This document shows, piece after piece, positions 28,601-61,581 of a DNA stretch of 64,000 bases. Position 1 is the first letter of the stretch; each line of letters begins with the position of its first letter. A program made the translations under genes and the position numbers. The stretch spans positions 20,708,001 through 20,772,000 of the forward strand of contig NC_043021.1 of assembly GCF_006345805.1 (NCBI RefSeq), written 5' to 3'. The notes beneath the pieces are model-generated. The model saw only the letters and a list, made by a program, of their open reading frames with translations. It was not told the DNA's origin and did no database searches. This DNA is from Octopus sinensis (lineage: Eukaryota).

Positions 28601-28989
28601 ATAATACTAGTATATATATATATATATATAACATATATATGAGGAGGTGTTAAAAAGTTCCTGGCTTTGCATAAAAGAAAATACTGAGTGCAGATATGAA
28701 CAGCACATGGGAACTGGTATTAAGGAAGGATAGGAGAATATTAGATTTATAATTATGGTTTTATTCAACATCTTCCTCTCTCAGATTCATACCCTCATTG
28801 TAGTGGTCCTTCAGTTTTTCTAAGCCCTGTAAAAGAACTTGGTAGGTTGGGCCTTGAATCAGGCCTTTCACAATACTGTTAAAGCCAAGCACTTTTCAGA
28901 ACCCACTTCTATATATTAAGTATATGTAGACAAATATACATACAGGCATATATTTATGTATGTATATATATGTGTGTATATATGTGTGT

Positions 28990-37291: not shown

Positions 37292-37689
37292 TCCATGTGC
37301 TTGGCCGGAGTGGGCAGTTGTCTGTTCGTCTTCGCTACGTAAGGTTGGTAGTTTATTTATGATGTGTTCAGAATCAGTTCTGCTGAGGATCATAAGACGT
37401 AAGTTGAATGTGAAATCACGGTGATACAGAACTAAATTCATTTTTTAAATGTCTTGCTTTGAAAAACTGCATTTAGGTATGATTAGTATAATTTTGGTAG
37501 TAATGACTTTGTCCCTCTTAGTGTGAGGCATTTATGTGTAATAATGCCCTCTATACAATATATATATATATATATATATAATTTATTTATGGGCCCTTTC
37601 CAAGCCTAGCCAGGCTCATAGGCCCAGTTTCCCGGTTTCTGTGGCAGCTCAAGAAACAGTAAGAAAGATTGCGAGATAGTTGTACAAAA

Positions 37690-37900
37690 GGGGTCGTTTT
37701 TCGCTTCCATAATGTGAGGCCGTAGTTCAGTCACAACTATACGTGTGCCATTGCACAATCTTGGCTGATCCATGTTTCTAAGAAGCATGATGACTGCCCC
37801 CTTCTTCAACTCAAGATCGTGTGACGCCATCCCGGACGGTTCCAAAGTGTTGAGAAATTCAACCGGATAATGAACAACATCATCCTGGTAAATTTCAAGC
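37690..37900 (-). pseudogene. Helitron RepHel PIF1-like helicase fragment
   Basis: YPVEFLNTLEPSGMASHDLELKKGAVIMLLRNMDQPRLCNGTRIVV...IMEAK within ORF 37606-38001. Confidence 0.85.
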
Positions 37901-38265
37901 CACTGACCGCCGACAACCCGGGTACGCCTCCTTAGTCCAGACCCCCGCAGCATCTCCTGTACCAAGGTCAGCGTTACAAACTTAACCCCCATGAACAGCA
38001 CCGCGAATCCCCAATCCCCAACACTTCTTCATGCCTGTCCACCCCGCATACTGTACGGGTGTGCATCTGCTCCCCGCAGACGCACAAATATGTGTCTACT
38101 GGTGTACATGTATACGCGTGCGCTCCCATATTCACGTGCAGCTATGCGTGTTCACGTCTGTGCACATGCACGCTAGCGTGTGCTCGCGCACGTGTTCTCG
38201 CGCACGTGTGCGTGTCCTCGTATACATATATGCACGGGGATAAAAGTGTGCACGCAGGTGTGTGA

Positions 38266-39237: not shown

Positions 39238-39989
39238 CAATAATAATAAAGGGTAAAATTAATTAATTAACTCGTAATTAATAATTCCACCAAGTAGTAT
39301 ACGGCATGTTAAAAGGACCATTTTTCGGTAAACTTAAACAATATTTTTATAATTATAATTAGGGTTCAACAAAAATTTGCTTCACCAACATACCGAACTT
39401 TAGAAAAGAGCAGCCAAAGAACCTTAGCTATTTCTTCTACTATAAGAAAAAACTCCCGGACAACAAATACTCAAAACAACCACGTAGACAGAGGGGGAAA
39501 ATAACGAAATTCACTCGGTATTTGATTACCTGTGGACGCGTTTCGGAATTAGATCGGTATGAAGAATGTAAAATCATACTTCATCAAAACATTTTCCTCT
39601 TCAGCACAGAATTCCAAGATTTTAAATTTGAGAGCATTGAAAAAATTGAACATACCTATCCAATTCAAGTGATATCAGACACACTATATCCAATGACCAG
39701 CACCAACGAATTTGTCCCTCGTTCCACAGTCAGCCGGATTTTTTTTGTTGAAGTCATTCCCGGAGTTAACAAAACCCATGTCCCATGGAATGGATAAAAT
39801 TACTCACCGTTGAAGACCACATTTCGACCACGGGCCCTCCAGTCTTTTCTCGGCCGAGACGTTTGTCAGCAAAAGCGGGATTAGGACATACGTTACAGCT
39901 CGGAATTGTATGTCTTTCTTCCAGTAACTGAGTTGCTCCATTACTCATGGTCCCCAGGAAATCCCTATCTGACACCAGTTGTCCAATAT

Positions 39990-41747
39990 AGGTCATCAGT
40001 CCCCTTAGTTCCTCACCATGTACGAAGGCGTGCGTGACAGTTTCACTGACACGCCCGCACCTCGGGCATGCGGGTGGGGTACCAACGCCATGCCTTGACA
40101 ACCTCTCTCGAACTGACAAGGCTGATCGGTAGCACAAGCAAGCCAAGGATGTCTGGAAGTTGTCCAGATATCTCGGCCCGAATGTCCTTCCGAACAGGTT
40201 GACAAGCTGTTCCTCTTCGAAGCCTAGTCTACCCCAGGATGTCGTCGGACATATGCTCTACCAACCCGTAGTGGTAGCCCCGCTAACGGTATTGCTTGTT
40301 CGGGAGAACAGAGCGAGTGCATGTCTGCACTCCCTCTTCCATTCGCTCATTTTTGTTCTTCGCGTGATCCATGCGCCCACGTCCCGAGGGAACGTCAATT
40401 GTGGCAGGAAGAACTTGACATGCGGTGACTACACCCGTTCACCATCCAAGTAGAGCCAGATTTTTCTCAACCTCAGCGCATCATCAGCCAAGAAATCCCT
40501 AACCCACCCTTTAACGGTTTCTGGCAGCACATGAGGCGCCTCACAAGTGGTGGTTTCCCATTCCACAAAAAGCGGAAAAGGATCCATTCCAGCTTGGTCA
40601 GCCACTCTCCAGGGCAAGGCACATCGGTTAGGCGGTTGGTTATCACAGATGCTATAAACACCTGTGCAACCTCGACCCTCCCTAGCAAGGATAGCAACCT
40701 CCCAGATCAAGTCTGGGTTATGGCCGTCACCTTGCCTGTGACCTCGCTCCAGTTTTTCTCCATCTGGAGATCTGGTCCAAACCAGACTCCAAGCAATTTA
40801 ACCGGGCCCTCCGTCCAACGTCCCACGACGCTGTTGGGAGACATCGACTTGCCCCTCCGGGTGCCGAGTTGCAAGCCGACTGATACTTCCTAGTTAATTT
40901 TTGCTCCTGCCACCTCTTCGTATCTTTTGATGGCCTCTTCTACACGAGGTAGCTGCCCTTCATCAGACACGATGATGGTGACATCATCCGCATATGCCGT
41001 CACTCTCCTACCGTAACATAGATCACGCGGATCTCCCCGTGTGGCCTCCAATTTCCGCAGTAGTGGCTCAAGTGCCAATACATACAGAAGCGGGTGCAGC
41101 CCTGGCGAATTGAATGTTCGATCACGAACGGCTTCGAGAAGAAACCGTTTACCCGGACGATTGAATCGATGTCGCTATACATAGCATTGAACCAACTACG
41201 AAAAGTCGGGTCCAGTCCAACCGCCCTGAGGACTGCTCCCAGATACCGATGGTCAACCCTATCGAATGCCTTAGACTGGTCTAAATTCACCAGTGCCCTA
41301 CATTTGCCAGAAATTTTACCCACCCGCTCTATAGTGTCGTGTATGAGGTGAAGGTTGTCGTGTATTGTCCTGCCTGGGATGGCACATGTCTGTGCTTCTC
41401 CCACCAGGTCGCCCACTACAAGTCTCAATCTCTTGGCTAACAATTGGCCAAAATCTTTAACTCTGTGTTTAGCAGAGTTATGGGCCTAAAGTTATTAATG
41501 TCATTCCCATTGCACGAGTCCTTCCTGATCAGTGTCACTACTCCCCGGCTCACATATTTAGGGATTCTCCTGTTCTGCTAGCAGTTCGCATATACACCGG
41601 CCAGTATGTTCCCGAATAAGTTTGGCATACTCTTATAAAATTCGTAAGGAAGACCATCCAGTCCGGGCGACTTGTCCCCGGGGCACTCAGAAAGCACCTC
41701 TATGACCTCCACAAATGTGATCGGCCTTTCATAGCGCTCCGCCTTAC
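39990..41747 (-). pseudogene. Tx1/L1-clade LINE ORF2 fragment, copy A
   Basis: NFRPITLLN, LDQSKAFDRVDH, IRQGC, YADD, GGLG and the zf-RVT CPRCGRVSETVTHAF; frameshifted. Confidence 0.9.
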
Positions 41748-42505
41748 GGTCTCGACATCTCCCTGTGTTCTTCCCTACATTCGTCCCCTGTTCTTTGGTG
41801 CCAAACTATTTGCTCTTACCAAGCCCAATGGTGACTTCCGCCCCATAGCAATTGGTGGTACTCTGCGACAGGTGTGTCTGTCTTCAGTTTCTAAATGCCT
41901 GTCAGCCAAATTTTCTCCTACCCAGCTACGGGTGGGTACTAAGCTAGACTATGAGGCTGAAGCCCATGCCACTAGAGCTTTCACTAACTTGCCTTCTGAG
42001 TCCCCAAAGGTCATCCTTAAACTAGACTTCAAAAACGCCTTCAATTCCATCAGTTGGGATGTCATCTTCCGTGTAGTAAGGGAGACTGCTCAAAACCTCT
42101 ATCACTTTGCTTGGCAAGCTTATCGGGAGCCCTCCAACCTCGCCTTTGGTGACCACCTCATTCCACCTGTCTTTGAAGTCCAACAGGATGACCCACTTGA
42201 ACCATATTTATTATTATTGTCTTTTCTTATCATCAAATATTGATCTGTCGATGCTGGATTAGTGAATACAGGTGTGGGTGGGCAAATGTAGACATACAGT
42301 TGTTTGACCCTTCAGTATTCAGATTATTCTATCAAATGTAATATTTTCTTTTATTCATGTCGTTTTGAAGTTATCCTGAAATTAACAGGATGACCCACCC
42401 ACTTGGACCTTCTCTATTTGCCCTGGCTATTGACGATGTTATCAAGATGGGAGCTGACCTAGACTTGAATGTCTGGTATCTTGACAATGCCTGTTTGGGG
42501 GCTCC
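41748..42505 (+). pseudogene. CRE-like non-LTR RT fragment, copy A
   Basis: FFGAKLFALTKPNGDFRPIAIG...PTQLRVG...KLDFKNAFNS...QQDDPL / LGPSLFALAID...LNVWYLDN; interrupted by an insert with the TSD AACAGGATGACCCAC. Confidence 0.8.
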
Positions 42506-44099
42506 TGCATTGATATTTTTTTCTTTCTCCTTTTAGTTTTTGTAAAATACATTCCTTTTCATTGAATTATTTTAAATGATATCAGTTTATACAACAAAAT
42601 AAGAGACGGAAAATGGGATTTCACGAGAGTCTCTTCTCATATACATTTTTACGTATCTTTTTATAGTTTTTATAAACTTCTTTGAGAAGAAGTGTGTCTT
42701 TTCTATCAGTTCCTTAAGGGGACACTAGAATATTGCAACAACTAAGCAAAACGATGACTAAAAAACGAGGTACTTATTCAAGAAGTCACCTAAGGGGACA
42801 GACACAATCTACACCTGTGATGTAAGACAATTGACTGTACAGTATCTCGCCTGCAAGGTACAGGGATATATATGTATATATATATGTGTGTATGTATATA
42901 TGTATGTATATACATATACTACGTAATATATGTGTATGTATATATATATACACAAAGGCACATAAGCATTATTTATAGAAACATATTTCTGCATAGAATA
43001 TATTATATATTATATAGTATATTCTTATTTCTTTACTACCCACAAGGGGCTAAACATAGAGGGGGCAAACAAGGACAGACAAACGGATTAAGTCGATTAC
43101 ATCGACCCCAGTGCGTAACTGGTACTTAATTTATCGACCCCGAAAGGATGAAAGGCAAAGTCAACCACGGCGGAATTTGAACTCAGAATGTAACGGCAGA
43201 CGAAATACGGCTACGCATTTCGCCCGGCGTGCCAACGATTCTGCCAGCTCGCCGCCCTAATATATAGTATATTCCTGTGAGAGCTGACAACATAAACAGT
43301 GTTTCCATGCCCCTCGTTGTAAAACAGTAAAGTCTCAAAGATTGTTCTTTCGTCTTATTTCATGGTACGGCTGCATTAACGAACCCCTATCTCACATGTC
43401 TGTTCCGTGAAAAGAAAGGAAAACTGAAAACCATAAACAGAACGGATTTACTTTCACTTTCACTTAAATTTCCCCGAAAAGTATAATCGCGCGCGCATTT
43501 CTGTATGTAACGATTGTGGAGGTTTATAATAAAGAATCTCGTTAATTTCATTTTCTGTTTCTGCTCGCTCTATCCATCCACCAGTCCGCCGGATCCATCC
43601 AAGTCCTACCTGCCTACCTGTCTGTCTGTCTTATATGCATGCTTGTGTAATTATGTCAGCGATGCGTTTGTATGAATGTAAATGTACACACACACACACA
43701 CACGCCTCTCTTTTACTTGTTTCAGGTATTTGACTGCGGCCATTCTGGAGCACCGCCTTTAGTCGAGCAAATCGACGCCAGGACTTATTCGTTGTAAGCC
43801 TAGTACTTATTCTATCAGTGTCTTTTCCCGAACCGCTAATATACGGGGACGTAAACACAGCAGTATCGGTTGTCAAATGATGTTGGGGGAACAAACACAG
43901 ACACACAAACACATATATATCCATATACATATATGTCTTTCAGTTTCCGTCTACCAAATCCACTCACAAGGCTGTGGTCGGCCCGAGGCTATAGTAGAAG
44001 ATACTTGCCCAAGGTGCCACGCAGTGGCACTGAACCCGGAATTATGTGGTTAATAAGCAAGCTACTTACCACACAGCCACTCGTGCACCTGTATGTGTG

Positions 44100-44103
44100 T
44101 GTG

Positions 44104-44194
<91 letters not shown>

Positions 44195-44390
44195 TATATA
44201 TATATACATATATATACATATATATATACATAAATATACATAGACATATATATATACATACATATGTATATATATATATGTATATATATATGTATATATA
44301 TATGTATATATGTATGTATATATATGTATATATATGTGTGTATGTATGTATATACATACACTACGTAATATATGTGTATGTATATATATA
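44100..44390. repeat. Compound (TA)n/(TACA)n microsatellite
   Basis: Direct reading; source of the spurious YI-repeat ORFs. Confidence 0.95.
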
Positions 44391-44982
44391 CACACATAGG
44401 CACATAAGCATTATTTATAGAAACATATTTCTGCATTGTTCTTTCGTCTCTTTTCATGGTCAGGCTGCATTAACGAACTCCTATCTCACATATCTCTTCC
44501 GTGAAAAGAAAGGAAAACCCAAAACTTTAAATAGAACGGATTTACTTTCACTTTAATTTCCACGAAAAGCATAATCGCGCGCGCACTTCTGTATTTTATA
44601 CCCTGGCTATTTCAGATGACGCATTCGCTTCCTATCACCTCAAGTCGTCGCTTGCTAAACGCACTCGCAACTGAAATTATATACATTCACACATCTCAAC
44701 AAGCCTTCACTTCTACAATATTATATTTCAATCAATCACTTCGGATACTATGGAATATTAATTAAGACTTCTACACACTACGTTAATCGAATTCTATGCA
44801 TTAAGTATCGGCAATTCTCCTTGATTACGAACGATCCTTTCGATGTCATTTCTCGACTGAATTTAGAAATCCTGGAAATATACATACTGTGAGTAAACTT
44901 TCCACTCTAGAATTATTTTCAATAGCATCTACGGTATTTCTTTCCACCTGGTACGAAGACTATATATACACTCACAAACACA

Positions 44983-45372
44983 ATGAGCCTTAGACTCAGT
45001 CCAAGCGACATCCGCTATACTCAAGATTCAATTGCCTGTAAGTTCCGTAACGGGACAACATTGACAGAAACCATTTCAGATTTAGTCAAAGGTACAATCA
45101 CGCCTGACGGCATTCCTGTAATTTCGGTTTACCTAAAGGATGGGAAATACTACAGCACTGACAATAGGAGGCTATACGTTTTCAAAGAGCTGCAACGTCG
45201 GAGTCAACCAGACTTGAAGATAAGGGTTTACGTTACGTCGGCGGCACTATCACAATCGAAGTTCACGACGCTTAACGATGGCCAAAGTATAACAGTCCGA
45301 AGTGGATCAATAGGCTGGTTAAGCATGGATTTTGATGACTCAAGCACGGATTCTGATGACTTCTTCTTGTAG
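44983..45372 (+). CDS. Small intronless protein with a ParB/sulfiredoxin-like motif, copy A (129 aa)
   Basis: Intact, non-repetitive ORF; IRYTQDSI...IPVISV...YYSTDNRRLYVFK; acidic tail; present in all three units. Fold assignment is by motif recognition only. Confidence 0.75.
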   Translation: MSLRLSPSDIRYTQDSIACKFRNGTTLTETISDLVKGTITPDGIPVISVYLKDGKYYSTDNRRLYVFKELQRRSQPDLKIRVYVTSAALSQSKFTTLNDGQSITVRSGSIGWLSMDFDDSSTDSDDFFL

Positions 45373-45937
45373 AATTATGAATTTAAAAAAAATATTCCAT
45401 TGCTAAAAGAAAGAAAAAACAACAAAAACCAAAAAGCACGTTGCCGAATTTTACTGTTCCGAAAACAATCTATAAACTTCAAATTTACCCTCATGTCACC
45501 GACAGCATCTCTTCATTTAGAGAAGTGTCAAAAATCCAAAGTCTCTTGTATTTTATTTCAATAACCAACTCGCAAACCAAGTCATAATAATTGCCATTAT
45601 GCAAGGAACAAAACAAAACAAAACAAAAAACAATCTTTGCACGGAAAAAGTTAATTTGGGCGGTGTTTGGTTTCCGTAAGTAGTTTTAGTAAATCTTTAC
45701 TCCCTACTTTTAAAAACTGTAAATCTAAAAATGGCCGAAAGCGAAAACGTTGCCGAACGAGTGTGGGACAAAAATAAATAAACTAAATAAAAAATTTAAC
45801 CTTTGAAGGTATTTTTTTAATATGCTGGCCATTGATAAAATTTCTTTTCGTAAAAAATTTCATCCTATATTAGATGTATATATATATATTGTTAGCCACT
45901 ACACACATTTTTTTCTCTCCTTGTTTTTTCTGTGTAC

Positions 45938-45973
45938 CTTTCTGTAGAAGAGCGTAGGCTCGAAACGTAAAAG
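45938..45973 (+). ncRNA. Minimal hammerhead-like motif, unit A (also 52573-52608 and 62131-62166)
   Basis: CTTT-CTGTAGA-AGAGC GTAG GCTC-GAAACGTA-AAAG. Confidence 0.55.
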
Positions 45974-48184
45974 ACTTTTTCTATTTAACGGACTCTTCGT
46001 TTGCCGAACGACATGCACGAATGATTTGTTTATTGTTATCAAATTTTCGTGCCGCACATGAGCTCCCCCTCTTCAAATTGACTTTATCTGAACAGGCATA
46101 CGGTGTGCCACGCGTCAAGTATTGAAGTGATCGTAAAACATCGCGAGATAAAAGTGATTCAAGGTCCAAAATCGAAAATTCGAAATCTGAAGAACTTTCC
46201 ATTATGAACTAATTACATAATCTCCGCTCTATTCTTCTGTTGGGTTGCTAACTCGAGTTTCCGTTGTCAACAAATATTCACATTCTCTGTGTAATATTTA
46301 ATTTCTTTAATAGGGCGAGTGACGTCCTGTTCTGATTCCAACGCTATACCAATATCGAGGGGTCGCCAACCGTCCTCCCCGGCTGAAACTTAAAAAAAAA
46401 AAATGGAGCGGGTACGAAGAGGTTGAAAAAAAGTTTGGGCGTAACTTCGGTATATGTACCGGAAGTACCAGATACATTTCAAGAAAGTGTTGTTTTTTTT
46501 TATAAATATGGGATGTTAGGAGAAAAGGGTTTCTGTTATCTCCAGAAATGTAAACAAAGCCACTTCCGGTACCTATACCGAAGGATCGCCAAAGTTTGAA
46601 ACTATCTTAACCATATCTGTTTTTTCTTTTTGTATTTTTGATAGACTGTAAAAAACGGGGAAAAAATGTAACTCAAAAACCCAAAATAATCTTGGGTAAA
46701 CAAAAATTTGAAAAGAAGAAAAAAAGGTGGCATTCTTTTGTTTTTGTTTTCTTTTCTATCGCAAAGTCTGTTGTGCTAAAAACGGGATTTGAATATACAC
46801 ACACATGTAAGGGCGAAGGTAAAGCGAATGTACACACTACCTTTTTTTTTTTTTCAAAATTTTTTTTTTTAAATATCTGTTTACGATATTGAAGAATACG
46901 ATTTTGTCCCAAAACCACGCTTTCAAAGTTTTAATTTCTTCCACCCCAATTTCTCAATTATTAACTTTTTTTTTCGAATTCTTTTCAATCCATGTAGAAA
47001 AAGAGATTACGAATCTGGGATTTAAAAAAAAAAAATTTAATCCCTCCTCCCCCACCCATCACCTCCCCGCTTTCAAAAAGCTCAAAATTCCCTTGATGTT
47101 TCACGCATTCAAAAATATCAGACCATTACCAGAAAACCCGACATGCTAGAAACAGCAGCTAAACGACATTATTTCTGGAAAAACTTCCTCACTTTCTAAA
47201 AAGTTAAAAGTGAAACATTGGGAGTTTTTAGCCTTTTGAAAGTGGGGAGTTGATGGATATTTGAAGTTGGACAAGGAATTTGAGTGTTTCTTTCAAGAAA
47301 ATTTTTAAAAAAATTCTCAAAGATTCGTCATCTCTCTATATGTCTACGTGGATTACAAGAAGGAGAAAAAAATCCAGCGATTAACTCCTCGATTCTTTTG
47401 CGTGGGATCAGGTACCATGACCTCCTAAAAATGTTGCAAATCCCTTATTTTGGTTCGGAATCCTTCTCGGAATCATTGGAATTTTTTTTTTTTTTTTGTT
47501 TCGTTGAATGAATTCCTGTGACCTAATATGCTACAAAATCCTTTTTGGGGTCCGAAAAACGGGATGGGGTGAGGTGGAAGCCTCGGAAATTTCAACCCCC
47601 ACCCCCCATTGATTTTTTCACCCGCACGATTTTCACTAAGGAAAAAGAAAATAGTAATAAAAATCGGGCCCAAACTAATTTTTGCGTGTGTGTGTGTGTG
47701 TTGAGAAAGATGAACGATTTAAAACAAATATATCTTAATTGTTGTGTGAGAAAGTATATATATTCTGATGATAAAATATTGTATCTTTCAAAAGCATCCT
47801 AAATTTATAGACTACTAGCAGTATCTCCCGGCGTTGCTCGAGATTGTAAGGGAAATAACTATAAAGAATTTTTAGAGAGTTATAGCCAAAAAATAGCAAA
47901 AGATGCATTAAATTCCCCTTCATCAGCTGCCCCTGGTTCGACTCAATGCATGTTTCGAAGGTAAAGGCAGGGATACATATATACATATATACGACGGGCT
48001 TCTTTTAGTTTCTGTCTACCAAATCCACTCACAAGGCTTTGATCAGCCCGAGGCTATAGTAGAAGACACTTGCCCAAGGTGCCATGCAGTGGGACTGAAC
48101 CCAGAACCATGTGGATTGCCTAAATGCTGTCTATAAATAAACGCGAGAATAAAGTTCATCTTCATAGCGAATTCGAATTAAGGC

Positions 48185-48337
48185 TGTGGTGTGTGCGAGA
48201 GATTCGAATATAAAGGAACCTACCTTCTCTTCGATCTGATGGAGACCCTTCAGTGGTAACGGATCCTTCGACACAGCCCGACCCGAACGCTAGAGATAGC
48301 AGCTGCTTCGCCCAAACTTAGCAACGTCTTCACCCGT
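48185..48337 (-). repeat. Gypsy LTR fragment (matches 3628-3777)
   Basis: TGGTGTG.GCGAGAGATT...GAACGCTAGAGATAGCAGCTGCTTC...CACCCGT shared with the 5' LTR. Confidence 0.9.
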
Positions 48338-50285
48338 TTGTCAGCAAAAGCGGGATTAGGACATACGTTACAGCTCGGAATTGTATGTCTTTCTTCCAGT
48401 GACTGCGTCGCTCCATTACTCATTGTCCCCAGGAAATCCCTATCTGACACCAGTTGTTCAATATAGGTTATCAGTCCCCTTAGTTCCTCACAATGTACGA
48501 AGGCGTGCGTGACAGTTTCACTGACACGCCCGCACCTCGGGCATGTGGGTGGGGTACCAACGCCATGCCTGACAACCTCCCTCGAACTGACAAGGCTGAT
48601 CGGTAGCACAACTAGGCCAAGGATGTCTGGAAGTTGTCCAGATACTCGGCCCAAATGTTTTCCAAACAGGTTGACAAGCTGTTCCTCTTCGAAGCCTGTC
48701 ACCCCCAGGATGTCGTCGGACATATGCTCTACAACCCGTAGTGGTAGCCCCGCTGCCGGTATTGCTTGTTCGGGAGAACAGAGCGAGTGCATGTCTGCAC
48801 TCCCTCTGCCATTCGCTCATTTTTTGTTCTTCGCGTGATCCATGCGCCCACTTCCGAGGGAACGTCAATTGTGGAAGGAAGAACTTGACATGCGGTGACT
48901 ACACCCGTTCACCATCCAGGTAGAGCCAGTTTTCTCAACCTCAGCGCATCATCAGCCAAGAAATCCCTAACCCACCCTTTAACGGTTTCTGGCAGCACAT
49001 GAGGCGCCTCACAAGTGGTGGTTTCCCATTCCACAAAAAGCGGAAAAGGATCCGTTCCAGCTTGGTCAGCCACTCCCCAGGGCAAGGCACATCGGTTAGG
49101 CGGTTGGTTATAACAGATGCTATAAACACCTGTGCAACCTCGACCCTCCCTAGCAAGGACAGCAACCTCCCAGACCAAGTCTGGGTTATGGCCGTCACCT
49201 TGCCTGTGACCTCGCTCCAGTTTTTCTCCATCTGGAGATCTGGTCCAAACCAGACTCTAAGCAATTTAACCGGGCCCTCCGTCCAATGTCCCACGACGCT
49301 GTTGGGAGACATCGACTTGCCCCTACGGGTGCCGAGTTGCAAGCCGACTGAACTTCCTAGTTATTTTGCTCCTGCCACCTCTTCGTATTTTTTGATGGCC
49401 TCTTCTACACGAGGTAGCTGCCCTTCATCAGACACGATGATGGTGACATCATCCGCATATGCCGTCACTCTCCTACCGTAACATAGATCACGCGGATCTC
49501 CCCGCGTGGCCTCCAATTCCGCAGCAGTGGCTCAAGTGCCAATTAACAGAAGCGGAGGCAGGCCTGGCGAATTGAATGTTCGATCACGAACGGCTTCGAG
49601 AAGAAAAAACCGTTACCCGGACGATTGAATCGATGTCGCTATATACATAGCATTGAACCATCTACGAACAGTCGAGTCCAGTCCAACCGCCCTGAGGACT
49701 GCTCCCAGATACCGATGGTCAACCCTATCGAATCCTTAGACTGGTCTAAATTCACCAGTGCCCTACATTTGCCAGAAATTTTACCCACCCGCTCTATAGT
49801 GTCGTGTATGAGGTGAAGGTTGTCGTGTATTGTCCTGCTGGGATGGCACATGTCTGTGCTTCTCCCACCAGGTCGCCCACTACAGTCTCAATCTCTTGGC
49901 TAACAATTGGCCAAAATCTTTACTCTTGTGTTTAGCAGAGTTATGGGCCTAAAGTTATTAATGTCATTCCCCTGCTCGGGTCCTTCCTGATCAGTGTCAC
50001 TACTCCCCGGCTCACATATTAGGATTCTCCTGTTCTGCTACCATTCGCATATACACCGGCCAGTATGTTCCCGAACAAGTTTGGCATACTCTTATAAAAT
50101 TCGTAAGGAAGACCATCCAGTCCGGGTGACTTGTCCCCCGGGGCACTCAAGAAAGCACCTCTATGACCTCCACAAATGTGATCGCCTTTCATAGCGCTCC
50201 GCCTTACATGCCGAGAGACACGGGCCGCCGGCCAGGAAATCCCGATTGCATCTTTCCAGTGGGTTTCTGGTGCTGGGATCGATAG
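48338..50285 (-). pseudogene. Tx1/L1-clade LINE fragment, copy B
   Basis: Same motifs as copy A. Confidence 0.88.
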
Positions 50286-50651
50286 CTTACGGTCTCGACA
50301 TCTCCCTGTCAGCCGGTTGATGTTGGTCTTGAGCTCTTGGAGAACCTATCGCAGTTTATAAACTTGTTCTCGTGCGAGTGTGTCTTCCCTACATTCGTCC
50401 CCTGTTCTTGGGTGCAAACTATTTGCTCTTACCAAGCCCAATGGTGACTTCCGCCCCCATAGCAATTGGTGGTACTCTGTGACAGGTGTGTGTCTTCAAT
50501 TTCTAAATGCCTGTCAGCCAAATTTTCTCCTACCCAGCTACGGGTGGGTACTAAGCTAGACTATGAGGCTGAAGCCCATGCCACTAGAGCTTTCACTAAC
50601 TTGCCTTCTGAGTCCCCAAAGGTCATCCTTAAACTAGACTTCAAAAACGCC
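50286..50651 (+). pseudogene. CRE-like RT fragment, copy B (3' part deleted)
   Basis: Ends abruptly after KLDFKNA. Confidence 0.78.
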
Positions 50652-51616
50652 ATACGTAATATGTGTATGTATATATATATACACAAAGGCACATAAGCAT
50701 TATTTATAGAAACATATTTCTGCATAGAATATATTATATATTATATAGTATATTCCTTATTTCTTTACTACCCACAAGGGGCTAAACATAGAGGGGGCAA
50801 CAAGGACAGACAACGGATTAAGTCGATTACATCGACCCCAGTGCGTAACTGGTACTTAATTTATCGACCCCGAAAGGAGGATGAAAGGCAAAGTCAACCA
50901 CGGCGGAATTTGAACTCAGAATGTAACGGCAGACGAAATACGGCTACGCATTTCGCCCGGCGCGTGCCAACGATTCTGCCAGCTCGCCGCCCTAATATAT
51001 AGTATATTCTGTGAGAGCTGACACACATAAACAGTGTTTCCATGCCCCTCGTTGTAAAACAGTAAAGTCTTAAAGATTGTTCTTTCGTCTCTTTTCATGG
51101 TACGGCTGCATTAATGAACCCCTATCTCACATATGTCTTCCATGAAAAGAAAGGAAAACCAAAAACTTTAAATAGAACGGATTTACTTTCACTTTAATTT
51201 CCACGAAAAGCATAATCGCGCGCGCACGTCTGTATTTTGTATCCTGGCTATTTCAGATGACGCATTCGTTCCTATCACCTCAAGTCGTCGCTTGCTAAAA
51301 CACTCGCAACTGAAATTATATACATTCACACATCTCAAACAAGCCTTCACCTACAATATTATATTTCAATCAATCACTTCGGATACTATGGAATATTAAT
51401 TAAGACTTCTACACACTACGTTAATCGAATTCTATGCATTAAGTATCGGCAATTTTCCTTGATTACGAACGATCCTTTCGATGTCATTTCTCGACTGAAT
51501 TTAGAAATCCTGGAAAATACATACTGTGAGTAACTTTCCACTCTTGAATTATTTTCAATAGCATCTACGGTATTTCTTTCCACCTGGTACGAAGACTATA
51601 ATACACTCACAACACA

Positions 51617-52024
51617 ATGAGCCTTAGACTCAGTCCAAGCGACATCCGCTATACTCAGATTCAATTGCCTGTAAGTTCCGTAACGGGACAACATTGACAG
51701 AAACCATTTCAGATTTAGTCAAAGGTACAATCACGCCTGACGGCATTCCTGTAATTTCGGTTTACCTAAAGGATGGGAACTAACAGCACTGACAATAGGA
51801 GGCTATACGTTTTCAAAGAGCTGCAAAGTCGGAGTCAACCAGACTTGAAGATAAGGGTTCACGTTACGTCGGCGGCACTACCACCATCGAAGTTCACGAC
51901 GCTTAACGATGGCCAAAGTATAAAAGTCCGAGGACCATCATCAAACAACCGGTTAAGCATGGATTTTGATGACTTATACATGGATTTTGATGACTTATAC
52001 ATGGATTCCGATGATGAATTTTAA
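51617..52024 (+). pseudogene. ParB/Srx-like ORF, copy B (frameshifted as assembled)
   Basis: 1-nt loss near 51657 and 2-nt loss near 51780 relative to A and C; 3' half matches copy C. Confidence 0.7.
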
Positions 52025-55000
52025 AAAAATATTCCATTGCTAAAAGAAAGAAAAAAACAACAAAATCCAAAAAGCACGTTGCCGAATTTTACTGTTCCGA
52101 AAAAACAATCTATAAACTTCAAATTTACCCTCATGTCACCGACAGCATCTCTTCATTTAGAGAAGTGTCAAAAATCCAAAGTCTCTTGTATTTTATTTCA
52201 ATAACCAACTCGCAAACCAAGTCATAATAATTGCCATTATGCAAGGAACAAAACAAAACAAAACAAAAACAATCTTTGCACGGAAAAAGTTAATTTGGGC
52301 GGTGTTTGGTTTCCGTAAGTAGTTTTAGTAAATCTTTACTCCCTACTTTTAAAAACTGTAAATCTAAAAATGGCCGAAAGCGAAAACGTTGCCGAACGAG
52401 TGTGGGACAAAATAAATAAACTAAATAAAAATTTAACCTTTGAAGGTATTTTTTTAATATGCTGGCCATGATAAAATTTCTTTTCGAAAAAATTTCATCC
52501 TATATTAGATGTATATATATATATTGTTAGCCACTACACACATTTTTTTCTCTCCTTGTTTTTTCTGTGTACCTTTCTGTAGAAGAGCGTAGGCTCGAAA
52601 CGTAAAAGACTTTTTCTATTTAACGGGACTCTTCGTTTGCCGAACGACATGCACGAATGATTGTTTATTGTTATCAAATGTTCGTGCCGCATATGAGCTC
52701 CCCCTCTTCAATTGACTTTATCTGAACAGGCACACGGTGTGCACGCGTCAAGTGTTGAAGTGATCGTCGAACATCGCGAGATAAAAGTGATTCAAGGACC
52801 AAAATCGAAAATTCGAAATCTGAAGAACTTCCATTATGAACTAATTACATAATCTCCGCTCTATTCTTCTGTGGGTTGCTAACTCGAGTTTCCGTGTCAA
52901 CAAATATTCACATTCTCTGTGTAATATTTAATTTCTTTAATAGGGCGAATGACGTCCTGTCCTGATTCCAACGCTATACCAATATCGAGGGGTCGCCAAC
53001 CGTCCTCCCCGGCTGAAACTTAAAAAAAAAATGGAGCGGGTACGAAGAGGTTGAATAAAAGTTGGGCGCGTAACTTCGGTATAGGTACCGGAAGTACCAG
53101 ATACATTTCAAGAAGTGTTGTTTTTTTTTTTAAATATGGGAGATGTTAGGAGAAAAGGGTTCTGTTATCTCCAGAAATGTAAACAAAGCCACTTCCGGTA
53201 CCTAAACCGAAGGATCGCCAAAGTTTGAAACTATCTTAACCATATCTGTTTTTTCTTTTGTATTTTTGATAGACTGTAAAAAACGGGGAAAAAATGTAAC
53301 TCAAAAACCCAAAATAATCTTGGGTAAATAAAAATTTGAAAAGAGAAGAAAAAAGGGTGCATTCTTTGTTTTTTGTTCTTTTCTATCGCAAAGTCTGTTG
53401 TGCTAAAAACGGGATTTGAATATATATATTATATATAATATACACACATGTAAGAGCGAAGGTAAGCGAATGTACACACTTTTTTTTTTTTTCAAAATTT
53501 TTTTTTTTTAATATCTGTTTACGATATTGAAGAATACGATTTTGTCCAAAAACCACGCTTTCAAAGTTTTAATTTCTTCCACCCCAATTTCTCAATTATT
53601 AACTTTGTTTTTCGAATTCTTTTTAATCCATGTAGAAAAACAGAGATTACGAATCTGGGATTTAAAAAAAAAAAATTTACCCCCTCCCCCACCCATCACC
53701 TCCCCGCTTTCAAAAAGCTCAAAATTCCCTTGATGTTTCACGCATTCAAAAATCTCAGACCATTACCAGAAAACCCGACATGCTAGAAACAGCAGCTAAC
53801 TAAACACATTATTCTGGAAAAACTTCCTCACTTTCTAAAAAGTTAAAAGTGAAACATTGGGAGTTTTTAGCCTTTTGAAAGTGGGGAGCTGATGGATATT
53901 GAAGTTGGACAAGGAATTTGAGTGTTTTTTTCAAGAAAATTAAAAAAAAAATTCTCAAAGATTCGTAATCTCTCTATATATGTCTACGTGGATTACAAGA
54001 AAGAGAAAAAAATCCAGCGATTAACTCCTCGATTCTTTTGCGTGGGATCAGGTACCATGACCTCCTAATATGCTGCAAATCCCTTATTTTGGTTCGGAAG
54101 AAGAGGGGGACTCCCCGCTTCTCGGAATCATTGGAATTTTTTTTTTTGTTTCGTTGAATGAATTCCTGTGACCTAATATGCTACAAAACCCTTTTTGGGG
54201 TCCGAAAAACGGGGTGGGGTGAGGTGGAAGCCTCGGAAATTTCAACCCCTACCCCCAATTGATCTTTTTACCCGCACGATTTTCACTAAGGAAAAAGAAA
54301 ATAGTAATAAAAATCGGGCCCAAACTAATTTTTGCGTGTGTGTGTGTTGAGAAAGATGAACGATTTAAAACAAATATATCTTAATTGTTGTGTGAGAAAA
54401 TATATATATTCTGATGATAAAATATTGTATCTTTCAAGAGCATCCTAAATTTATAGACTACTAGCAGTATCTCCCGGCTTTGCTCGGGTTTGTAAGGGAA
54501 ATAACTATAAAGAATTTTTAGAGAGTTATAGCAAAAAAATAGCAAAAAATGCATTAAATTCCCCTTCATCAGCTGCCCCTGGTTCGACTCAATGCGTGTT
54601 TCGAAGGTAAAGGCAGGTATATATATATACATATATACGACGGGCTTCTTTTAGTTTCCGTCTACCAAATCCACTCACAAGGCTTTGATCAGCCCGAGGC
54701 TATAGTAGAAGACACTTGCCCAAGGTGCCACGCCGTGGGACTGAACCCAGAACCATGTGGTTGGTAAGCAAGCTACTTACCACACAGCCATTCCTGATGC
54801 AAAAAAAAAATACACACATGACAACACTCACTCTCTCTCTCTCTCTCACCTCCAATTCATATACATCTTTCACTTTCTGCTCTCACTCCAAGGCAAATGC
54901 CGCTGTATATATCGTGCACACACACACAGGCCAAGCGATACGGACCAAGTCTAGATACACATACACAGGCTGACAAGTATTTACTTTCATTTTCGGTTGT

Positions 55001-56465: not shown

Positions 56466-56617
56466 TGTGGTGTGTGCGAGAGATTCGAAATAAAGGAACC
56501 TACCTTCTCTTCGATCTGATGGAGACCCTTCAGTGGTAACAGATCCTTTGACACAGCCCGACCCGAACGCTAGAGACAGCAGCTGCTTCGCTCAAACTTA
56601 GCAACGTGTTCACCCGT
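56466..56617 (-). repeat. Gypsy LTR fragment (matches 3628-3777)
   Basis: Same as the 48185 fragment. Confidence 0.9.
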
Positions 56618-58570
56618 TTGTCAGCAAAAGCGGGATTAGGACATACGTTACAGCTCGGAATTGTATGTCTTTCTTCCAGTGACTGAGTTGCTCCATTACT
56701 CATGGTCCCCAGGAAATCCCTATCTGACACCAGTTGTCCGATATAGGTTATCAGTCCCCTTAGTTCCTCACAATGTACGAAGGCGTGCGTGACAGTTTCA
56801 CTGACACGCCCGCACCTCGGGCATGTGGGTGGGGTACCAACGCCATGCCTTGACAACCTCCCTCGAACTGACAAGGCTGATCGGTAGCACAACTAGGCCA
56901 AGGATGTCTGGAAGTTGTCCAGATACCTCGGCCCGAATGTCCTTCCGAACAGGTTGACAAGCTGTTCCTCTTCGAAGCCTAGTCTCCCCCAGGATGTCGT
57001 CGGACATATGCTCTACCAACCCGTAGTGGTAGCCCCGCTGCCGGTATTGCTTGTTCGGGAGAACAGAGCGAGTGCATGTCTGCACTCCCTCTGCCATTCG
57101 CTCATTTTTGTTCTCCGCGTGATCCATGCGCCCACGTCCCGAGGGAACGTCAATTGTGGAAGGAAGAACTTGACATGCGGTGACTACAGACGTTCACCAT
57201 CCAGGTAGAGCCAGTTTTCTCAACCTCAGCGCATCATCAGCCAAGGCATCCCTAACCCACCCTTTAACGGTTTCTGGCAGCACATGAGGCGCCTCACAAG
57301 TGGTGGTTTCCCATTCCACAAAAAGCGGAAAAGGATCCGTTCCAGCTTGGTCAGCCACTCCCCAGGGCAGGGCACATCGGTTAGGCAGTTGGTTATCACA
57401 GATGCTATAAACACCTGTGCAACCTCGGCCCTCCCTAGCAAGGATAGCAACCTCCCAGATCAAGTCTGGGTTATGGCCGTCACCTTGCCTGTGACCTCGC
57501 TCCAGTTTTTCTCCATCTGGAGATGTGGTCCAAACCAGACTCCAAGCAATTTAACCGTCCAACGTCCCACGAAGCTGTTTGGAGACATCGACTTGCCCCT
57601 ACGGGTGGCGAGGTGCAAGCCGACTGATACTTCCTAGTTAATTTTTGCTCCTGCCACCTCTCCGTATCTTTTGATGGCCTCTTCTACACGAGGTAGCTGC
57701 CTTTCATCAGACACGATGATGGTGACATCATCCGCATATCCCGTCACTCTCCTACCGTAACATAGATCACGCCGATCTCCCCGCGTGGCCTCCAAATTCC
57801 GCAGCAGTGGCTCAAATGCCAATACATACAGAAGCGGAGGCAGGCCTGGCGAATTGAACGTTCGATCACGAACGGCTTCGAGAAGAAACCGTTTACCCGG
57901 ACGATTGAATCGATGTCGCTATACATAGCATTGAACCATCTACGAACAGTCGAGTCCAGTCCAACCGCCCTGAGGACTGCTCCCAGATACCGATGGTCAA
58001 CCCTATCGAATGCCTTAGACTGGTCTAAATTCACCAGTGCCCTACATTTGCCAGAAATTTTACCCACCCGCTCTATAGTGTCGTGTATGAGGTGAAGGTT
58101 GTCGTGTATTGTCCTGCCTGGGATGGCACATGTCTGTGCTTCTACCACCAGGTCGCCCACTACAAGTCTCAATCTCTTGGCTAACACTTGGCCAAAATCT
58201 TTAACTCTGTGTTTAGCAGAATTATCGGCCTAAAGTTATTAATGTCATTCCCCTTGCTCGGGTCCTTCCTGATCAGTGTCACTACTCCCCGGCTCACATA
58301 TTTAGGGATTCTCCTGTTCTGCTAGCAGTTCGCATATACACCGGCCAGTATGTTCCCGAACAAGTTTGGCATACTCTTATAAAATTCGTAAGGAAGATCA
58401 TCCAGTCCGAGCGACTTGTCCCCGGGGCACTCAGAAAGCACCTCTATGACCTCCACAAATGTGATCGGCCTTTCATAGCGCTCCGCCTTACATGCCGAGA
58501 GACACGGGCCGCCGGCCAGGAAATCCCGATTGCATCTTTTCCAGTGGGTTTCTGGTGCTGGGATCGATAG
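56618..58570 (-). pseudogene. Tx1/L1-clade LINE fragment, copy C
   Basis: ORFs 57744-58187, 57634-57822 (YADD), 57226-57450 and 56530-56892 (zf-RVT). Confidence 0.9.
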
Positions 58571-59790
58571 CTTACGGTCTCGACATCTCCCTGTCAGCCG
58601 GTGATGCTGGTCTTGAGCTCTTGGAGAACCTATCGCAGTTTATAAACTTGTTCTCGTGCGAGTGTGTTCTTCCCTACATTCGTCCCCTGTTCTTTGGTGC
58701 CAAACTATTTGCTCTTACCAAGCCCAATGGTGACTTCCGCCCCATAGCAATTGGTGGTACTCTGCGACAGGTGTGTCTGTCTTCAATTTCTAAATGCCTG
58801 TCAGCCAAATTTTCTCCTACCCAGCTACGGGTGGGTACTAAGCTAGACTATGAGGCTGAAGCCCATGCCACTAGAGCTTTTACTAACTTGCCTTCTGAGT
58901 CCCCAAAGGTCATCCTTAAACTAGACTTCAAAAACGCCTTCAATTCCATCAGTTGGGATGTCATCTTCCGTGTAGTAAGGGAGACTGCTCAAAACCTCTA
59001 TCACTTTGCTTGGCAAGCTTATCGGGAGCCCTCCAACCTCGCCTTTGGTGACCACCTCATCCCACCTGTCTTTGAAGTCCAACAGGATGACCCACTTGAA
59101 CCATATTTATTATTATTGTCTTTTTTTTATCATCAAACTAGCAGTATCGCCCGGCGTTGCTCGGGTTTGTAAGGGAAATAACTATATAAGCATTTTTAGA
59201 GAGTTATAACAAAAAAATGCATTAAAAATGGAAAAAAATGATGGTGAATTTTTTTTTAATCGTTGACTCATCGTAGACATTTTTAGAGAGTTACTTCCCT
59301 TATATATTAGCGAAAAAAATGCATTAAAATGGAAAAAAATGATGGTAAATTTTTTTTTAATCGTAGACTCATCGTAGACGCGCGCTAATACCCAGAAGGC
59401 CTCGATATGAATCACGACTATAAGATACCCGGTTTTGGTTAAACTGCACCGCAAAATGTGGGAGTAGTTAGGAATATAAATCGTAGGAGACAGACACACA
59501 ACCTCTCTTTTATATATAAAGATATTGATCTGTCAAAGATATTGATTAGTGAATACAGGGGTGGGTGGGCAAATGCAGACATACAGTTGTTTGACCCTTC
59601 AGTATTCAGATTATTCTATCAAATGTAATATTTTCTTTTATTCATGTCGTTTTGAAGTTATCCTGAAATTAACAGGATGACCCACCCACTTGGACCTTCT
59701 CTATTTGCCCTGGCTATTGACGATGTTATCAAGATGGGAGCTGACCTAGACTTGAATGTCTGGTATCTTGACAATGCTTGTTTGGGGGCT
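58571..59790 (+). pseudogene. CRE-like RT fragment, copy C (longest), with nested inserts
   Basis: ORF 58492-59172: DISLSAGDAGLELLENLSQFINL...GAKLFALTKPNGDFRPIAIG...LDFKNAFNS; WYLDN motif near 59760. Confidence 0.82.
59138..59522 (-). mobile_element. Non-autonomous Helitron, 385 bp, present only in unit C
   Basis: Minus strand A|TC...CCCGAGCAACGCCGGG hairpin...CTAG|T; empty AT site in unit A near 42237. Truncated 3' ends at ~47813 and ~54461. Confidence 0.92.
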
Positions 59791-61170
59791 CCTGCATTGA
59801 TATTTTTTTCTTTCTCCTTTTAGTTTTTGTAAAATACATTCCTTTTCATTGAATTATTTTAAATGATATCAGTTTATACAACAAAATAAGAGACGGAAAA
59901 TGGGATTTCACGAGAGTCTCTTCTCATATACATTTTTACGTATCTTTTTATAGTTTTTATAAACTTCTTTGAGAGGAAGTGTCTCTTTTCTATCAGTTCC
60001 TTAAGGGGACACTAGAATATTGCAACAACTAAGCAAAACGATGACTAAAAAACGAGGTACTTATTCAAGAAGTCACCTAAGGGGACAGACACAATCTACA
60101 CCTGTGATGTAAGACAATTGACTGTACAGTATCTCGCCTGCAAGGTACAGGGATATATATGTATATATATATGTGTGTATGTATATATGTATGTATATAC
60201 ATATACTACGTAATATATGTGTATGTATATATATACACACAAAGGCACATAAGCATTATTTATAGAAACATATTTCTGCATAGAATATATATATATTATA
60301 TAGTATATTCCTTATTCTTTACTACCCACAAGGGGCTAAACATAGAGGGGGCAAACAAGGACAGACAAACGGATTAAGTCGATTACATTGACCCCAGTGC
60401 GTAACTGGTACTTAATTATCGACCCCGAAAGGATGAAAGGCAAAGTCAACCACGGCGGAATTTGAACTCAGAATGTAACGGCAGACGAAATACGGCTACG
60501 CATTTCGCCCGGCGTGCCAACGATTCTGCCAGCTCGCCGCCCTAATATATAGTATATTCCTGTGAGAGCTGACACCATAAACAGTGTTTCCATGCCTCTC
60601 GTTGTAAAACAGTAAAGTCTCAAAGATTGTTCTTTCGTCTCTTTTCATGGTACGGCTGCATTAACGAACTCCTATCTCACATGTCTGTTCCGTGAAAAGA
60701 AAGGAAAAACCGAAAACTATAAACAGAACGAATTTACTTTCACTTTAATTTCCACGAAAAGCATAATCGCGCGCGCACGTCTGTATTTTATATCCTGGCT
60801 ATTTCAGATGACGCATTCGCTTCCTATCACCTCAAGTCGTCGCTTGCTAAACGCACTCGCAACTGAAATTATATACATTCACAACATCTCAAGCCTTCAC
60901 TTCTACAATATTATATTTCAATCAATCACTTCGGATACTATGAATATTAATTAAGACTTCTACACACTACGTTAATCGAATTCTATGCATTAAGTATCGG
61001 CAATTTTCCTTGATTACGAACGATCCTTTCGATGTCATTTCTCGACTGAATTAGAAATCCTGGAAATATACATACTGTGAGTAAACTTTCCACTCTTGAA
61101 TTATTTTCAATAGCATCTACGGTATTTCTTTCCACCTGGTACGAAGACTATATATACACTCACAAACACA

Positions 61171-61581
61171 ATGAGCCTTAGACTCAGTCCAAGCGACATC
61201 CGCTATACTCAAGATTCAATTGCCTGTAAGTTCCGTAACGGGACAACATTGACAGAAACCATTTCAGATTTAGTCAAAGGTACAATCACGCCTGACGGCA
61301 TTCCTGTAATTTCGGTTTACCTAAAGGATGGGAAATACTACAGCACTGACAATAGGAGGCTATACGTTTTCAAAGAGCTGCAAAGTCGGAGTCAACCAGA
61401 CTTGAAGATAAGGGTTCACGTTACGTCGGCGGCACTACCACCATCGAAGTTCACGACGCTTAACGATGGCCAAAGTATAAAAGTCCGAGGACCATCATCA
61501 AACAACCGGTTAAGCATGGATTTTGATGACTTATACATGGATTTTGATGACTTATACATGGATTCCGATGATGAATTTTAA
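61171..61581 (+). CDS. ParB/Srx-like small protein, copy C (136 aa)
   Basis: Intact ORF; first 71 codons identical to copy A; tail contains a 21-nt tandem repeat (MDFDDLY x2). Confidence 0.75.
   Translation: MSLRLSPSDIRYTQDSIACKFRNGTTLTETISDLVKGTITPDGIPVISVYLKDGKYYSTDNRRLYVFKELQSRSQPDLKIRVHVTSAALPPSKFTTLNDGQSIKVRGPSSNNRLSMDFDDLYMDFDDLYMDSDDEF

Follow-up and report, generated by a model that had tools for sequence, protein, structure and literature searches.

An intact member of a tandemly amplified gene family in Octopus sinensis encodes a predicted stand-alone Tox-ParBL1-type domain

Introduction

Recent work recognises in the ParB fold a versatile module for binding nucleoside triphosphates (NTPs), among them CTP, ATP and GTP; for one version of it, the toxin ToxB, ATPase activity was demonstrated only lately. 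Another branch of the fold, the toxin domain Tox-ParBL1, was defined by Zhang et al. (2012, Biol Direct 7:18; PMC3482391), with NGK_2271 of Neisseria gonorrhoeae as its type example. Here we describe an intact open reading frame (ORF), copy A, in a 64,000-nucleotide stretch of the Octopus sinensis genome (RefSeq assembly GCF_006345805.1, contig NC_043021.1, positions 20,708,001 to 20,772,000 of the forward strand; hereafter the window). The product of copy A very probably has the ParB/sulfiredoxin (Srx) fold and belongs to Tox-ParBL1, and the gene is one of several copies in a tandem array.

Zhang et al. tied Tox-ParBL1 to ParB by profile-profile comparison and noted a conserved N-terminal Ser/Thr, which classical ParB lacks, together with an [NT][RT][RT] motif, mostly RR, corresponding to the DGHHR of classical ParB toxins (PMC3482391). 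The domain was found with HINT, RHS and filamentous-haemagglutinin toxins, with Imm-SUKH or Imm44 as immunity partners, and its range covered Actinobacteria, Proteobacteria, Firmicutes, a euryarchaeon and many eukaryotes, metazoans included. The eukaryotic members were explained as acquisitions from polymorphic toxins, independent of sulfiredoxin (PMC3482391). For ParB-type toxin domains a nuclease activity was favoured, with metal-dependent phosphotransfer leading to phosphodiester hydrolysis (PMC3482391). In the literature that we searched, the name Tox-ParBL1 is given to this domain by Zhang et al. (2012) only, other uses of 'ParBL1' being unrelated, and no publications were found for the NCBI or UniProt identifiers of family members, nor for a ParB-like domain with LXG.

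ToxB is a C-terminal ParB-CTPase-fold toxin of CdiA (Kaljevic et al., bioRxiv 2026, 10.64898/2026.05.05.722872). It is an ATP-specific ATPase whose activity depends on the motif arginine and is blocked by an immunity protein; it is toxic also in plant cells and does not bind DNA (10.64898/2026.05.05.722872). A 2025 survey of the ParB-CTPase fold, based on the Pfam family PF02195, found sulfiredoxin to be the commonest eukaryotic representative. The survey missed the Tox-ParBL1-type branch because PF02195, with which it was searched, does not detect it.

Results

Sequence features and homologues of copy A

Copy A had been singled out in a first-pass annotation, made from the letters of the window without database searches, as a stand-alone protein resembling the ParB/Srx superfamily. 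The pattern on which that reading was built is present exactly as quoted (P45-V-I47-S-V49, then Y56-Y57-S-T-D60-N61-R62-R63-L64), and so are the accompanying features. Copy A is a single-exon ORF of 129 residues, free of introns; its N-terminus, MSLRLSPSDIRY, is non-hydrophobic, with no signal peptide; its C-terminus, MDFDDSSTDSDDFFL, is an acidic, aromatic tail; and the position of the catalytic cysteine in Srx GCHR holds no Cys, the motif reading T-D-N-R-R and the sole Cys of the protein being C19.

A single-sequence search with copy A (phmmer) matched a bacterial PT-HINT toxin fragment with E = 4.6e-15. This match is a 201-residue metagenomic protein in which the domain directly follows the 'HNKC' end of HINT and is 45% identical to copy A over the whole core. 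The same search returned an Octopus sinensis protein at 94% identity and an O. bimaculoides protein at 76%. A profile built from five sequences recovered 3,608 cluster representatives (clusters at 50% identity) with E <= 1e-3, 1,337 of them with E <= 1e-10. The phmmer match and the number of profile-matched representatives place the copy A ORF far beyond chance.

In an alignment of 89 family members, N61, R62 and L64 are invariant, and Q14, S16, I17, G37, I47, D60, R63, G100 and R106 are conserved in at least 90%. These positions hold in the eukaryotic and bacterial groups alike, and copy A and an intact neighbouring paralogue, copy C, retain every one of them. The S16 position is Ser in 96% of the bacterial-type sequences and Ser or Thr in 89% of the named eukaryotic ones. 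The second domains of some tandem eukaryote-type proteins (P0028, P0019) read GNHRL or GNRRL and bridge the ParB-like and DNRR forms of the motif.

Predicted fold and arginine motif

We built an AlphaFold2 model of copy A with the 89-sequence alignment. The predicted local distance difference test (pLDDT) has a mean of 85.4, with block means of 81-97 over residues 1-110 and of 47 and 53 in the tail (residues 111-129); residues 109-118 fall below 50. The elements follow one another as three strands, helix 27-36, a hairpin (47-52/55-58), helix 61-73 and strands 80-85 and 104-106, an order of strands and helices that is also that of the ParB N-terminal domain. When the model was compared with the PDB by Foldseek, the top 19 matches all belonged to the ParB/Srx superfamily, in agreement with the fold proposed at first pass. 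They comprise Noc, ParB (with CTP-gamma-S or CDP bound), Atu1540, plant and human sulfiredoxin, SbnI and KorB; several of the 19 structures contain bound CTP, CDP or ADP, and the match probabilities collapse beyond the 19th.

The supposed equivalence of the arginine patch is borne out as well. In the topology of the model DNRR lies at the place of ParB GxxR and Srx GCHR, and hhalign, run with the domain profile, sets it on ParB GERR (P = 0.033) and Srx GCHR (3e-4); these statistics are weak, and the targets, single ParB and Srx sequences, serve for the register of the motif only.

At the level of sequence, the octopus protein has no match to PF02195 at E <= 10, and the 25 Pfam families listed at E <= 1 for the 89 members of the family do not include it. 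No meaningful match covering the domain came from Pfam, NCBIfam, PADLOC or PHROGs, and HMMER searches of PDB sequences returned chance matches only, whether the query was a single-protein-level profile or the 89-sequence one. The kinship with ParB is visible at the level of fold and motif only.

We are confident in assigning copy A to Tox-ParBL1 and to the ParB/Srx fold. The assignment to Tox-ParBL1 is by fit to the motifs, architectures and species range described for it, not by the type sequence NGK_2271. The same match, with metazoans already listed in 2012 (PMC3482391), means that the 'undescribed' effector of the first-pass annotation is not supported. Copy A adds an unannotated member to a family that was described by computation in 2012; it is not a new kind of system, and the discovery is incremental, because both the family and its presence in metazoans had been reported.

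Toxin context of the bacterial homologues

Among 249 sampled family proteins, the domain lies at the extreme C-terminus in 137 and is N-terminal or stand-alone in 96, and 19 of the 249 carry two or three copies in tandem. PT-HINT is present in 26 of the 89 alignment members, RHS, TEN_YD-shell and PT-TG also occur, and one bacterial member is labelled filamentous haemagglutinin by its source. A link to the effector domains of bacterial polymorphic toxins, suggested in the earlier annotation, is therefore upheld: homologues stand C-terminal after PT-HINT, RHS or PT-TG, and an immunity-like gene lies downstream.

A scan of one genome per species gave 44 bacterial or archaeal loci. It was designed on the bacterial sub-alignment, the 89-sequence alignment being too diverse for pattern design; a scan of genome contigs with an octopus-weighted alignment gave no match. 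The loci come from Streptomyces, Nocardia, Blastococcus, Pseudomonas, Microbulbifer, Paenibacillus, Acetivibrio, Leptospira, Planctomycetes, Chloroflexota and others, and the sole archaeal one from Methanolobus psychrotolerans. In most of the 44 the domain closes a long ORF, which in about half extends over more than 1,000 codons and reaches the locus edge, and a small ORF begins within a few bases of the stop of the toxin ORF.

This downstream ORF is the Pfam family DUF7660 in 26 of 38 cases (~85 residues, WEN...YE, often overlapping the toxin ORF; for example L019 3297-3554 and L029 3306-3566, among the bacterial and archaeal loci L007-L050). Two other, unnamed classes were seen, one of ~127-135 residues in Firmicutes and Methanolobus and one of ~140 residues in Planctomycetes and a metagenome-assembled genome of Oxalobacteraceae. 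The immunity candidates of two loci had no Pfam match; DUF7660 emerged from the wider set. A long ORF followed by a small one is the hallmark of a toxin-immunity pair, and for the immunity protein cognate to the toxin domain DUF7660 is a strong candidate. No DUF7660-like or other immunity-like ORF is present in the octopus window or its downstream continuation.

Eukaryotic members and their relationships

The animal members come from three octopus species, with several paralogues, from the bivalves Tegillarca, Mya and Mercenaria, from the annelid Dimorphilus and from the tunicates Styela, Ciona and Clavelina. Further eukaryotic members are found in the dinoflagellate Amphidinium, the haptophyte Prymnesium and Glomus. 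In these eukaryotes the domain stands at the N-terminus or alone. All named eukaryotic members are annotated 'uncharacterized'. Ten proteins from bivalve, tunicate, annelid and other sources (P0004, P0005, P0006, P0014, P0016-P0019, P0028 and P0033) carry two or three tandem domains; in the later copies of multi-domain eukaryote-type proteins the motif is often degenerate (DNER, DNEM or lost) or reads GNHRL/GNRRL.

In a neighbour-joining tree of 234 domains, the eukaryotic N-terminal-type sequences group together and the bacterial C-terminal-type sequences group together; the octopus sequences form three lineages, among which tunicate ones are interspersed. The tree is rough, with a midpoint root and without support values, and is too weak for counting transfers. 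At least two octopus chromosomes carry paralogues, and other animal phyla have homologues. O. bimaculoides has an orthologous intact ORF of 76% identity, and O. vulgaris has related intact ORFs. The recent horizontal or retro-origin considered in the first-pass annotation is not borne out, given the separation of eukaryotic from bacterial sequences in the tree, the presence on at least two chromosomes and the homologues in other phyla. The data are compatible with an old bacterial origin, as proposed in 2012.

A second octopus lineage (P0007, P0008, P0012; locus L006) has long Pro/Thr-rich repeat tails that end in ...CCVIL or ...CVIL, a CaaX-type box that suggests prenylation and membrane anchoring. 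These paralogues form a tandem pair on chromosome CM016863.1, within the span of an opposite-strand gene with a NUDIX_2 domain. The NCBI model LOC115211823 merges the two tandem single-exon copies (L006 10001-10645 and 13529-14269), and introns in the CaaX paralogue, which the 4.3-kb span of the model had implied, were rejected for this reason. A Logan contig encodes a close relative, P0009, and could not be classed as transcript or genome.

The tandem array

Amplification of the gene, proposed at first pass, is confirmed by copies B and C within the window and by the frameshifted copies D and E just downstream in the same assembly (Table 1). The array thus comprises at least five tandem units, with copies A and C intact and B, D and E frameshifted. 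It lies within the 28.9-Mb chromosome scaffold CM016883.1, with octopus repeats all round. In the window, three segments of ~3.7 kb are conserved head-to-tail (94.6-96.8% identity by self-blastn) and alternate with retroelement-derived blocks; each unit holds one gene copy, and the units are spaced at roughly 6.6-9.6 kb. Within the 3.7-kb conserved segment of copy A there is no further ORF of more than 86 residues. The copy A ORF has no transposase, reverse-transcriptase or integrase domain, and the copies are tandem, not dispersed, so that the check for a transposon origin did not point to one.

Table 1. Coordinates of copy A, its parts and the units of the tandem array. Positions are those of the window unless marked L004, in which position 10001 equals window position 61171.
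Feature	Position	Strand	Description or basis
Copy A ORF	44983..45372	+	Intact, single-exon, 129 residues; stand-alone Tox-ParBL1-type domain (probable) and acidic tail; ATG to TAG in one open frame
ParB/Srx-fold core domain, residues 1-108 (predicted)	44983..45306	+	pLDDT, Foldseek and homologue profile matches spanning positions 1-108
N-terminal motif T13-Q14-D15-S16-I17	45019..45033	+	Includes the conserved Ser of the family; 89-sequence alignment
D60-N61-R62-R63-L64 motif	45160..45174	+	N-terminal end of helix 61-73; corresponds to ParB GERR, Srx GCHR and ToxB GNHR
Disordered acidic/aromatic tail	45307..45369	+	MDFDD-type modules; local divergence hotspot; low pLDDT and copy comparison
Conserved ~3.7-kb segment of the tandem unit, with copy A	44435..48114	+	Equivalents at 51076-54760 and 60626-64000
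Retroelement-derived part of the tandem unit	39860..43506	.	Recurs at 48335-51235 and 56615-60786; fragments of non-LTR reverse transcriptase and zf-RVT, with a SINE-like repeat (LTR, long terminal repeat; SINE, short interspersed element)
Copy B	51617..52024	+	1-bp and 2-bp deletions (codons ~15 and ~55); pseudogene or assembly error
Copy C	61171..61581	+	Intact paralogue, 136 residues; start of NCBI model LOC118767871
Copy D	L004 ~19201-19660		One -1 at another site and a 4-bp insertion in the tail
Copy E	L004 ~28412-28820		Two small deletions, at the same two sites as in copy B

Copy C differs from copy A at five core residues (R72S, Y83H, S90P, Q91P and T104K), and from residue 107 on its C-terminal stretch and tail are different. 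In both B and E the deletions lie after codon 14 and at codon 55 (B, -1/-2; E, -2/-1), with the result that the frame is regained after ~41 codons with stops among them. The frameshifts of B, D and E could reflect recurrent mutation, gene-conversion mosaics, or long-read or polishing errors.

The variable C-termini noted at first pass are a property of the tail. Over codons 45301-45372, A and B/C diverge by 26%; in the unit alignment, 200-column windows from ~350 bp upstream to 650 bp downstream of the tail differ by 0-1.5%. The tail modules, MDFDD followed by LY or SSTDSDDFF, are combined differently among the copies.

No gene on record has a product that exactly matches copy A or copy C, and both therefore appear to be unannotated. 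The NCBI model LOC118767871 (151 residues) runs from the ATG of copy C over 18.8 kb to copy E (L004 10001-28819) and has no 5' untranslated region. It looks like a chimera of tandem copies, with the core of C joined to tail pieces of D/E type.

Upstream sites and surrounding DNA

The first-pass annotation also noted sites like those bound by interferon regulatory factors (IRFs), and this claim is marginal. An 8-mer core, AANNGAAA, occurs four times in the 548 bp upstream of the gene, against ~1.3 expected from the window average; a strict interferon-stimulated response element (ISRE; GAAANNGAAAS) is absent from the same 548 bp, all 11 matches in the window lying elsewhere. Six of the 11 are identical, reading GAAACTGAAAG, and fall within copies of the repeat family typified by 5864-6246. 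The excess of AANNGAAA is itself marginal, and the three copies of the gene's unit in the window, being duplicates, are not independent. The argument from IRF sites adds little. A scan for sigma-70 promoters and terminators was at chance level and is irrelevant to an animal gene.

The broken non-LTR pieces (RVT_1, zf-RVT) at 39766-42243, 48250-50651 and 56530-59172 recur once per unit at 96-99% identity, and were therefore duplicated with the gene and not inserted independently. A long, impure (TA/CA)n microsatellite (44062-44457) lies directly upstream of unit A, between a repeat copy (43706-44125) and the conserved segment that begins at 44435, mostly outside the blocks aligned to B and C. 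The window as a whole, which holds microsatellites, is typical octopus DNA.

At the left end of the window, an LTR-retroelement remnant on the minus strand (295-3590) comprises gag with a CCHC zinc knuckle (2832-3590), an aspartyl protease (2332-2895), a reverse transcriptase/RNase H-like ORF (1018-2295) and an integrase-like fragment (295-678) that has no Pfam match. An ORF fragment with a Pif1 helicase 2B domain (37606-38001, minus strand, E = 3e-18) is probably a Helitron or Pif1-like remnant. Two families of short dispersed repeats, one at 4109-4315 (~200 bp, about 9 further copies) and one at 5864-6246 (~380 bp, more than 10 further copies), have identities of 70-94% and are presumably SINE-like.

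Discussion

Proposed function

On balance we favour the view that copy A is an intact member of an amplified family, a stand-alone Tox-ParBL1 domain that is NTP-dependent and linked to biological conflict. The parts of this view are not equally secure. That the protein works by an NTP-dependent enzyme mechanism is plausible, if somewhat short of an even chance, and a role of the octopus family in conflict or defence is tentative. The nucleotide-consuming defence or stress effector suggested at first pass is conjectural.

The protein, having no signal peptide and a fold that starts at residue 2, would stay inside the cell, in the cytosol. There the beta-hairpin and the N-terminus of helix 61-73 would form a pocket that binds an NTP, its phosphates held by R62 and R63 (with N61) and a contribution coming from the Q14/S16 loop. 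On the model of sulfiredoxin, SerK/SbnI and ToxB of CdiA, the nucleotide would most likely be ATP. The NTP may then be hydrolysed, or its gamma-phosphate passed to a substrate. The acidic tail, disordered, fast-changing and variable by shuffling of modules, may bind partners or mask the basic pocket. Amplification by birth and death, combined with a hypervariable tail, would fit a role in biological conflict (immunity or stress) and not in housekeeping.

Several observations weigh against this view. At the level of the fold, the Foldseek E-values are modest (best 1.8e-3), the template modelling (TM) score is 0.45 over the full 129 residues, and sequence profiles reach neither PF02195 nor any PDB chain. 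At the level of mechanism, nucleotide, reaction and substrate are, for the whole family, matters of inference; the chemistry may differ from that of known relatives, because the protein has neither the Box III (ENLQR) helix that ParB uses for CTP hydrolysis nor the Srx cysteine; and Zhang et al. (2012) favoured a nuclease (PMC3482391). At the level of the genes, three of the five array copies are frameshifted, and LOC118767871 begins at the ATG and is chimeric across copies C to E. The cores of A and C differ by five non-synonymous and no synonymous changes, so that recent copies give no sign of purifying selection, although zero of five is uninformative either way, being expected about a quarter of the time under neutrality.

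Alternative explanations

The first alternative is that the domain is a nuclease (DNase or RNase) that cuts foreign nucleic acid, or the cell's own in death or stress, and neither consumes an NTP nor transfers from one. Nucleases predominate among polymorphic-toxin warheads, the 2012 argument leads from phosphotransfer to hydrolysis (PMC3482391), the bacterial homologues need an immunity protein and so have an intracellular toxic activity, and the basic RR patch could bind backbone phosphate. However, the only ParB-fold toxin that has been tested, ToxB, has ATPase activity and does not bind DNA; nucleotide-bound ParB, Noc and Srx are the closest matches in structure; and the invariant residues (N, R, R, L, Q, S, G, R) show no obvious acidic metal-binding triad. 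We consider a nuclease unlikely, while giving it real weight.

An equally unlikely but serious alternative is that the array is a decaying remnant carried along by a retroelement-rich segmental duplication, in which copy A has no function and has simply not yet been disabled. The frameshifts in three of five copies fit this account, as does the composition of the units, half of each being retroelement debris. Core divergence between A and C (1.6%) is about equal to that of the flanks (2.2%), with all five changes non-synonymous, and neither copy is on record as an annotated product, the NCBI model being a chimera without a 5' untranslated region. Against decay, none of the residues that are invariant in ~90 sequences from bacteria and eukaryotes has been lost from A or C, intact ORFs persist in O. 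bimaculoides (the 76% orthologue) and O. vulgaris, and the family persists in bivalves, an annelid and tunicates. The frameshifts, moreover, may be errors of long-read assembly, and an absence of synonymous changes among five carries the neutral expectation given above.

That the ORF is a passenger or component of a transposable element, a bacterial contaminant or a very recent horizontal transfer is highly improbable: it is intronless and sits amid non-LTR reverse-transcriptase fragments that are repeated with it, and its best non-octopus matches are bacterial (45% identity), but those fragments are broken, on the opposite strand and in separate ORFs, the head-to-tail units and their spacing indicate segmental duplication and not dispersed insertion, the surroundings are a chromosome scaffold with octopus repeats, and both the grouping of eukaryotic sequences apart from bacterial ones in the tree and the paralogues with other tails (CaaX included) on a second chromosome argue against contamination, recent transfer into octopus and a transposon passenger alike.

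Significance

The octopus array is a concrete animal case of an overlooked branch of the ParB fold, retained and amplified in animals, and its value is as an entry point to this branch, which experiments have left untouched. The family is invisible to PF02195, numbers more than 3,600 clusters, has a toxin-immunity context in bacteria and has intact, amplified members in several animal phyla. Its linkage to DUF7660 offers a ready bacterial toxin-immunity pair for first biochemistry. A bolder proposal, which we rate as improbable, is that lophotrochozoans and tunicates keep a domesticated warhead of bacterial polymorphic toxins, a ParB-fold NTPase or phosphotransferase, as an intracellular effector amplified in tandem arrays by birth and death, with the hypervariable acidic tail as a built-in inhibitor or sensor that replaces the bacterial immunity protein. 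If true, animals would have an innate-immune or cell-death effector of a new class and, with it, new ParB-fold chemistry.

Comparison with known systems

The N-terminal CTPase domains of ParB, Noc and KorB are the best structural matches to the copy A model (7ol9, 7bnr, 6sdk, 8qa9), with the same beta-alpha-beta-beta-alpha order and the arginine motif at the same place. The octopus protein differs from them in having no helix-turn-helix, dimerisation domain, ParA-binding motif or Box III ENLQR helix; the part that follows its core is a disordered acidic tail alone, which sets it apart from a canonical ParB DNA clamp.

Sulfiredoxin resembles it as a single-domain eukaryotic ParB-fold protein of ~100 residues, and the P-x-[IV]-x-V strand, the Y-[FY]-S hairpin and the helix arginine of the two align; the Srx structures 6ky4 and 1xw4 are among the Foldseek matches. 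In contrast to the F-G-G-C-H-R of sulfiredoxin, with its catalytic Cys, the octopus protein has D-N-R-R, and there is no significant HMMER similarity between them.

With Tox-ParBL1 the octopus protein shares the predicted ParB fold, the N-terminal Ser (S16) and N61-R62-R63 in the place of [NT][RT][RT]. The toxin architecture and species range of its homologues are those of Tox-ParBL1, the architecture being a property of the homologues and not of the octopus gene. Unlike the Tox-ParBL1 toxins, the octopus protein stands alone, without a delivery or pre-toxin part or an adjacent immunity gene, and has a variable acidic tail. The bacterial partners differ too from those reported in 2012: SUKH is found in none of the 38 downstream ORFs, DUF7660 occurs instead, and one of the unnamed classes could be Imm44.

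ToxB, like the bacterial members of the family, is a ParB-fold antibacterial warhead paired with a small immunity protein; it has no DNA-binding domains, and its G-N-H-R aligns with D-N-R-R. It is a classical, PF02195-positive ParB domain and is rare (52 species), whereas the octopus family is PF02195-negative and much larger. ATPase activity is established for ToxB only, which makes ToxB, on another branch of the fold, the nearest experimental precedent for the family to which copy A belongs.

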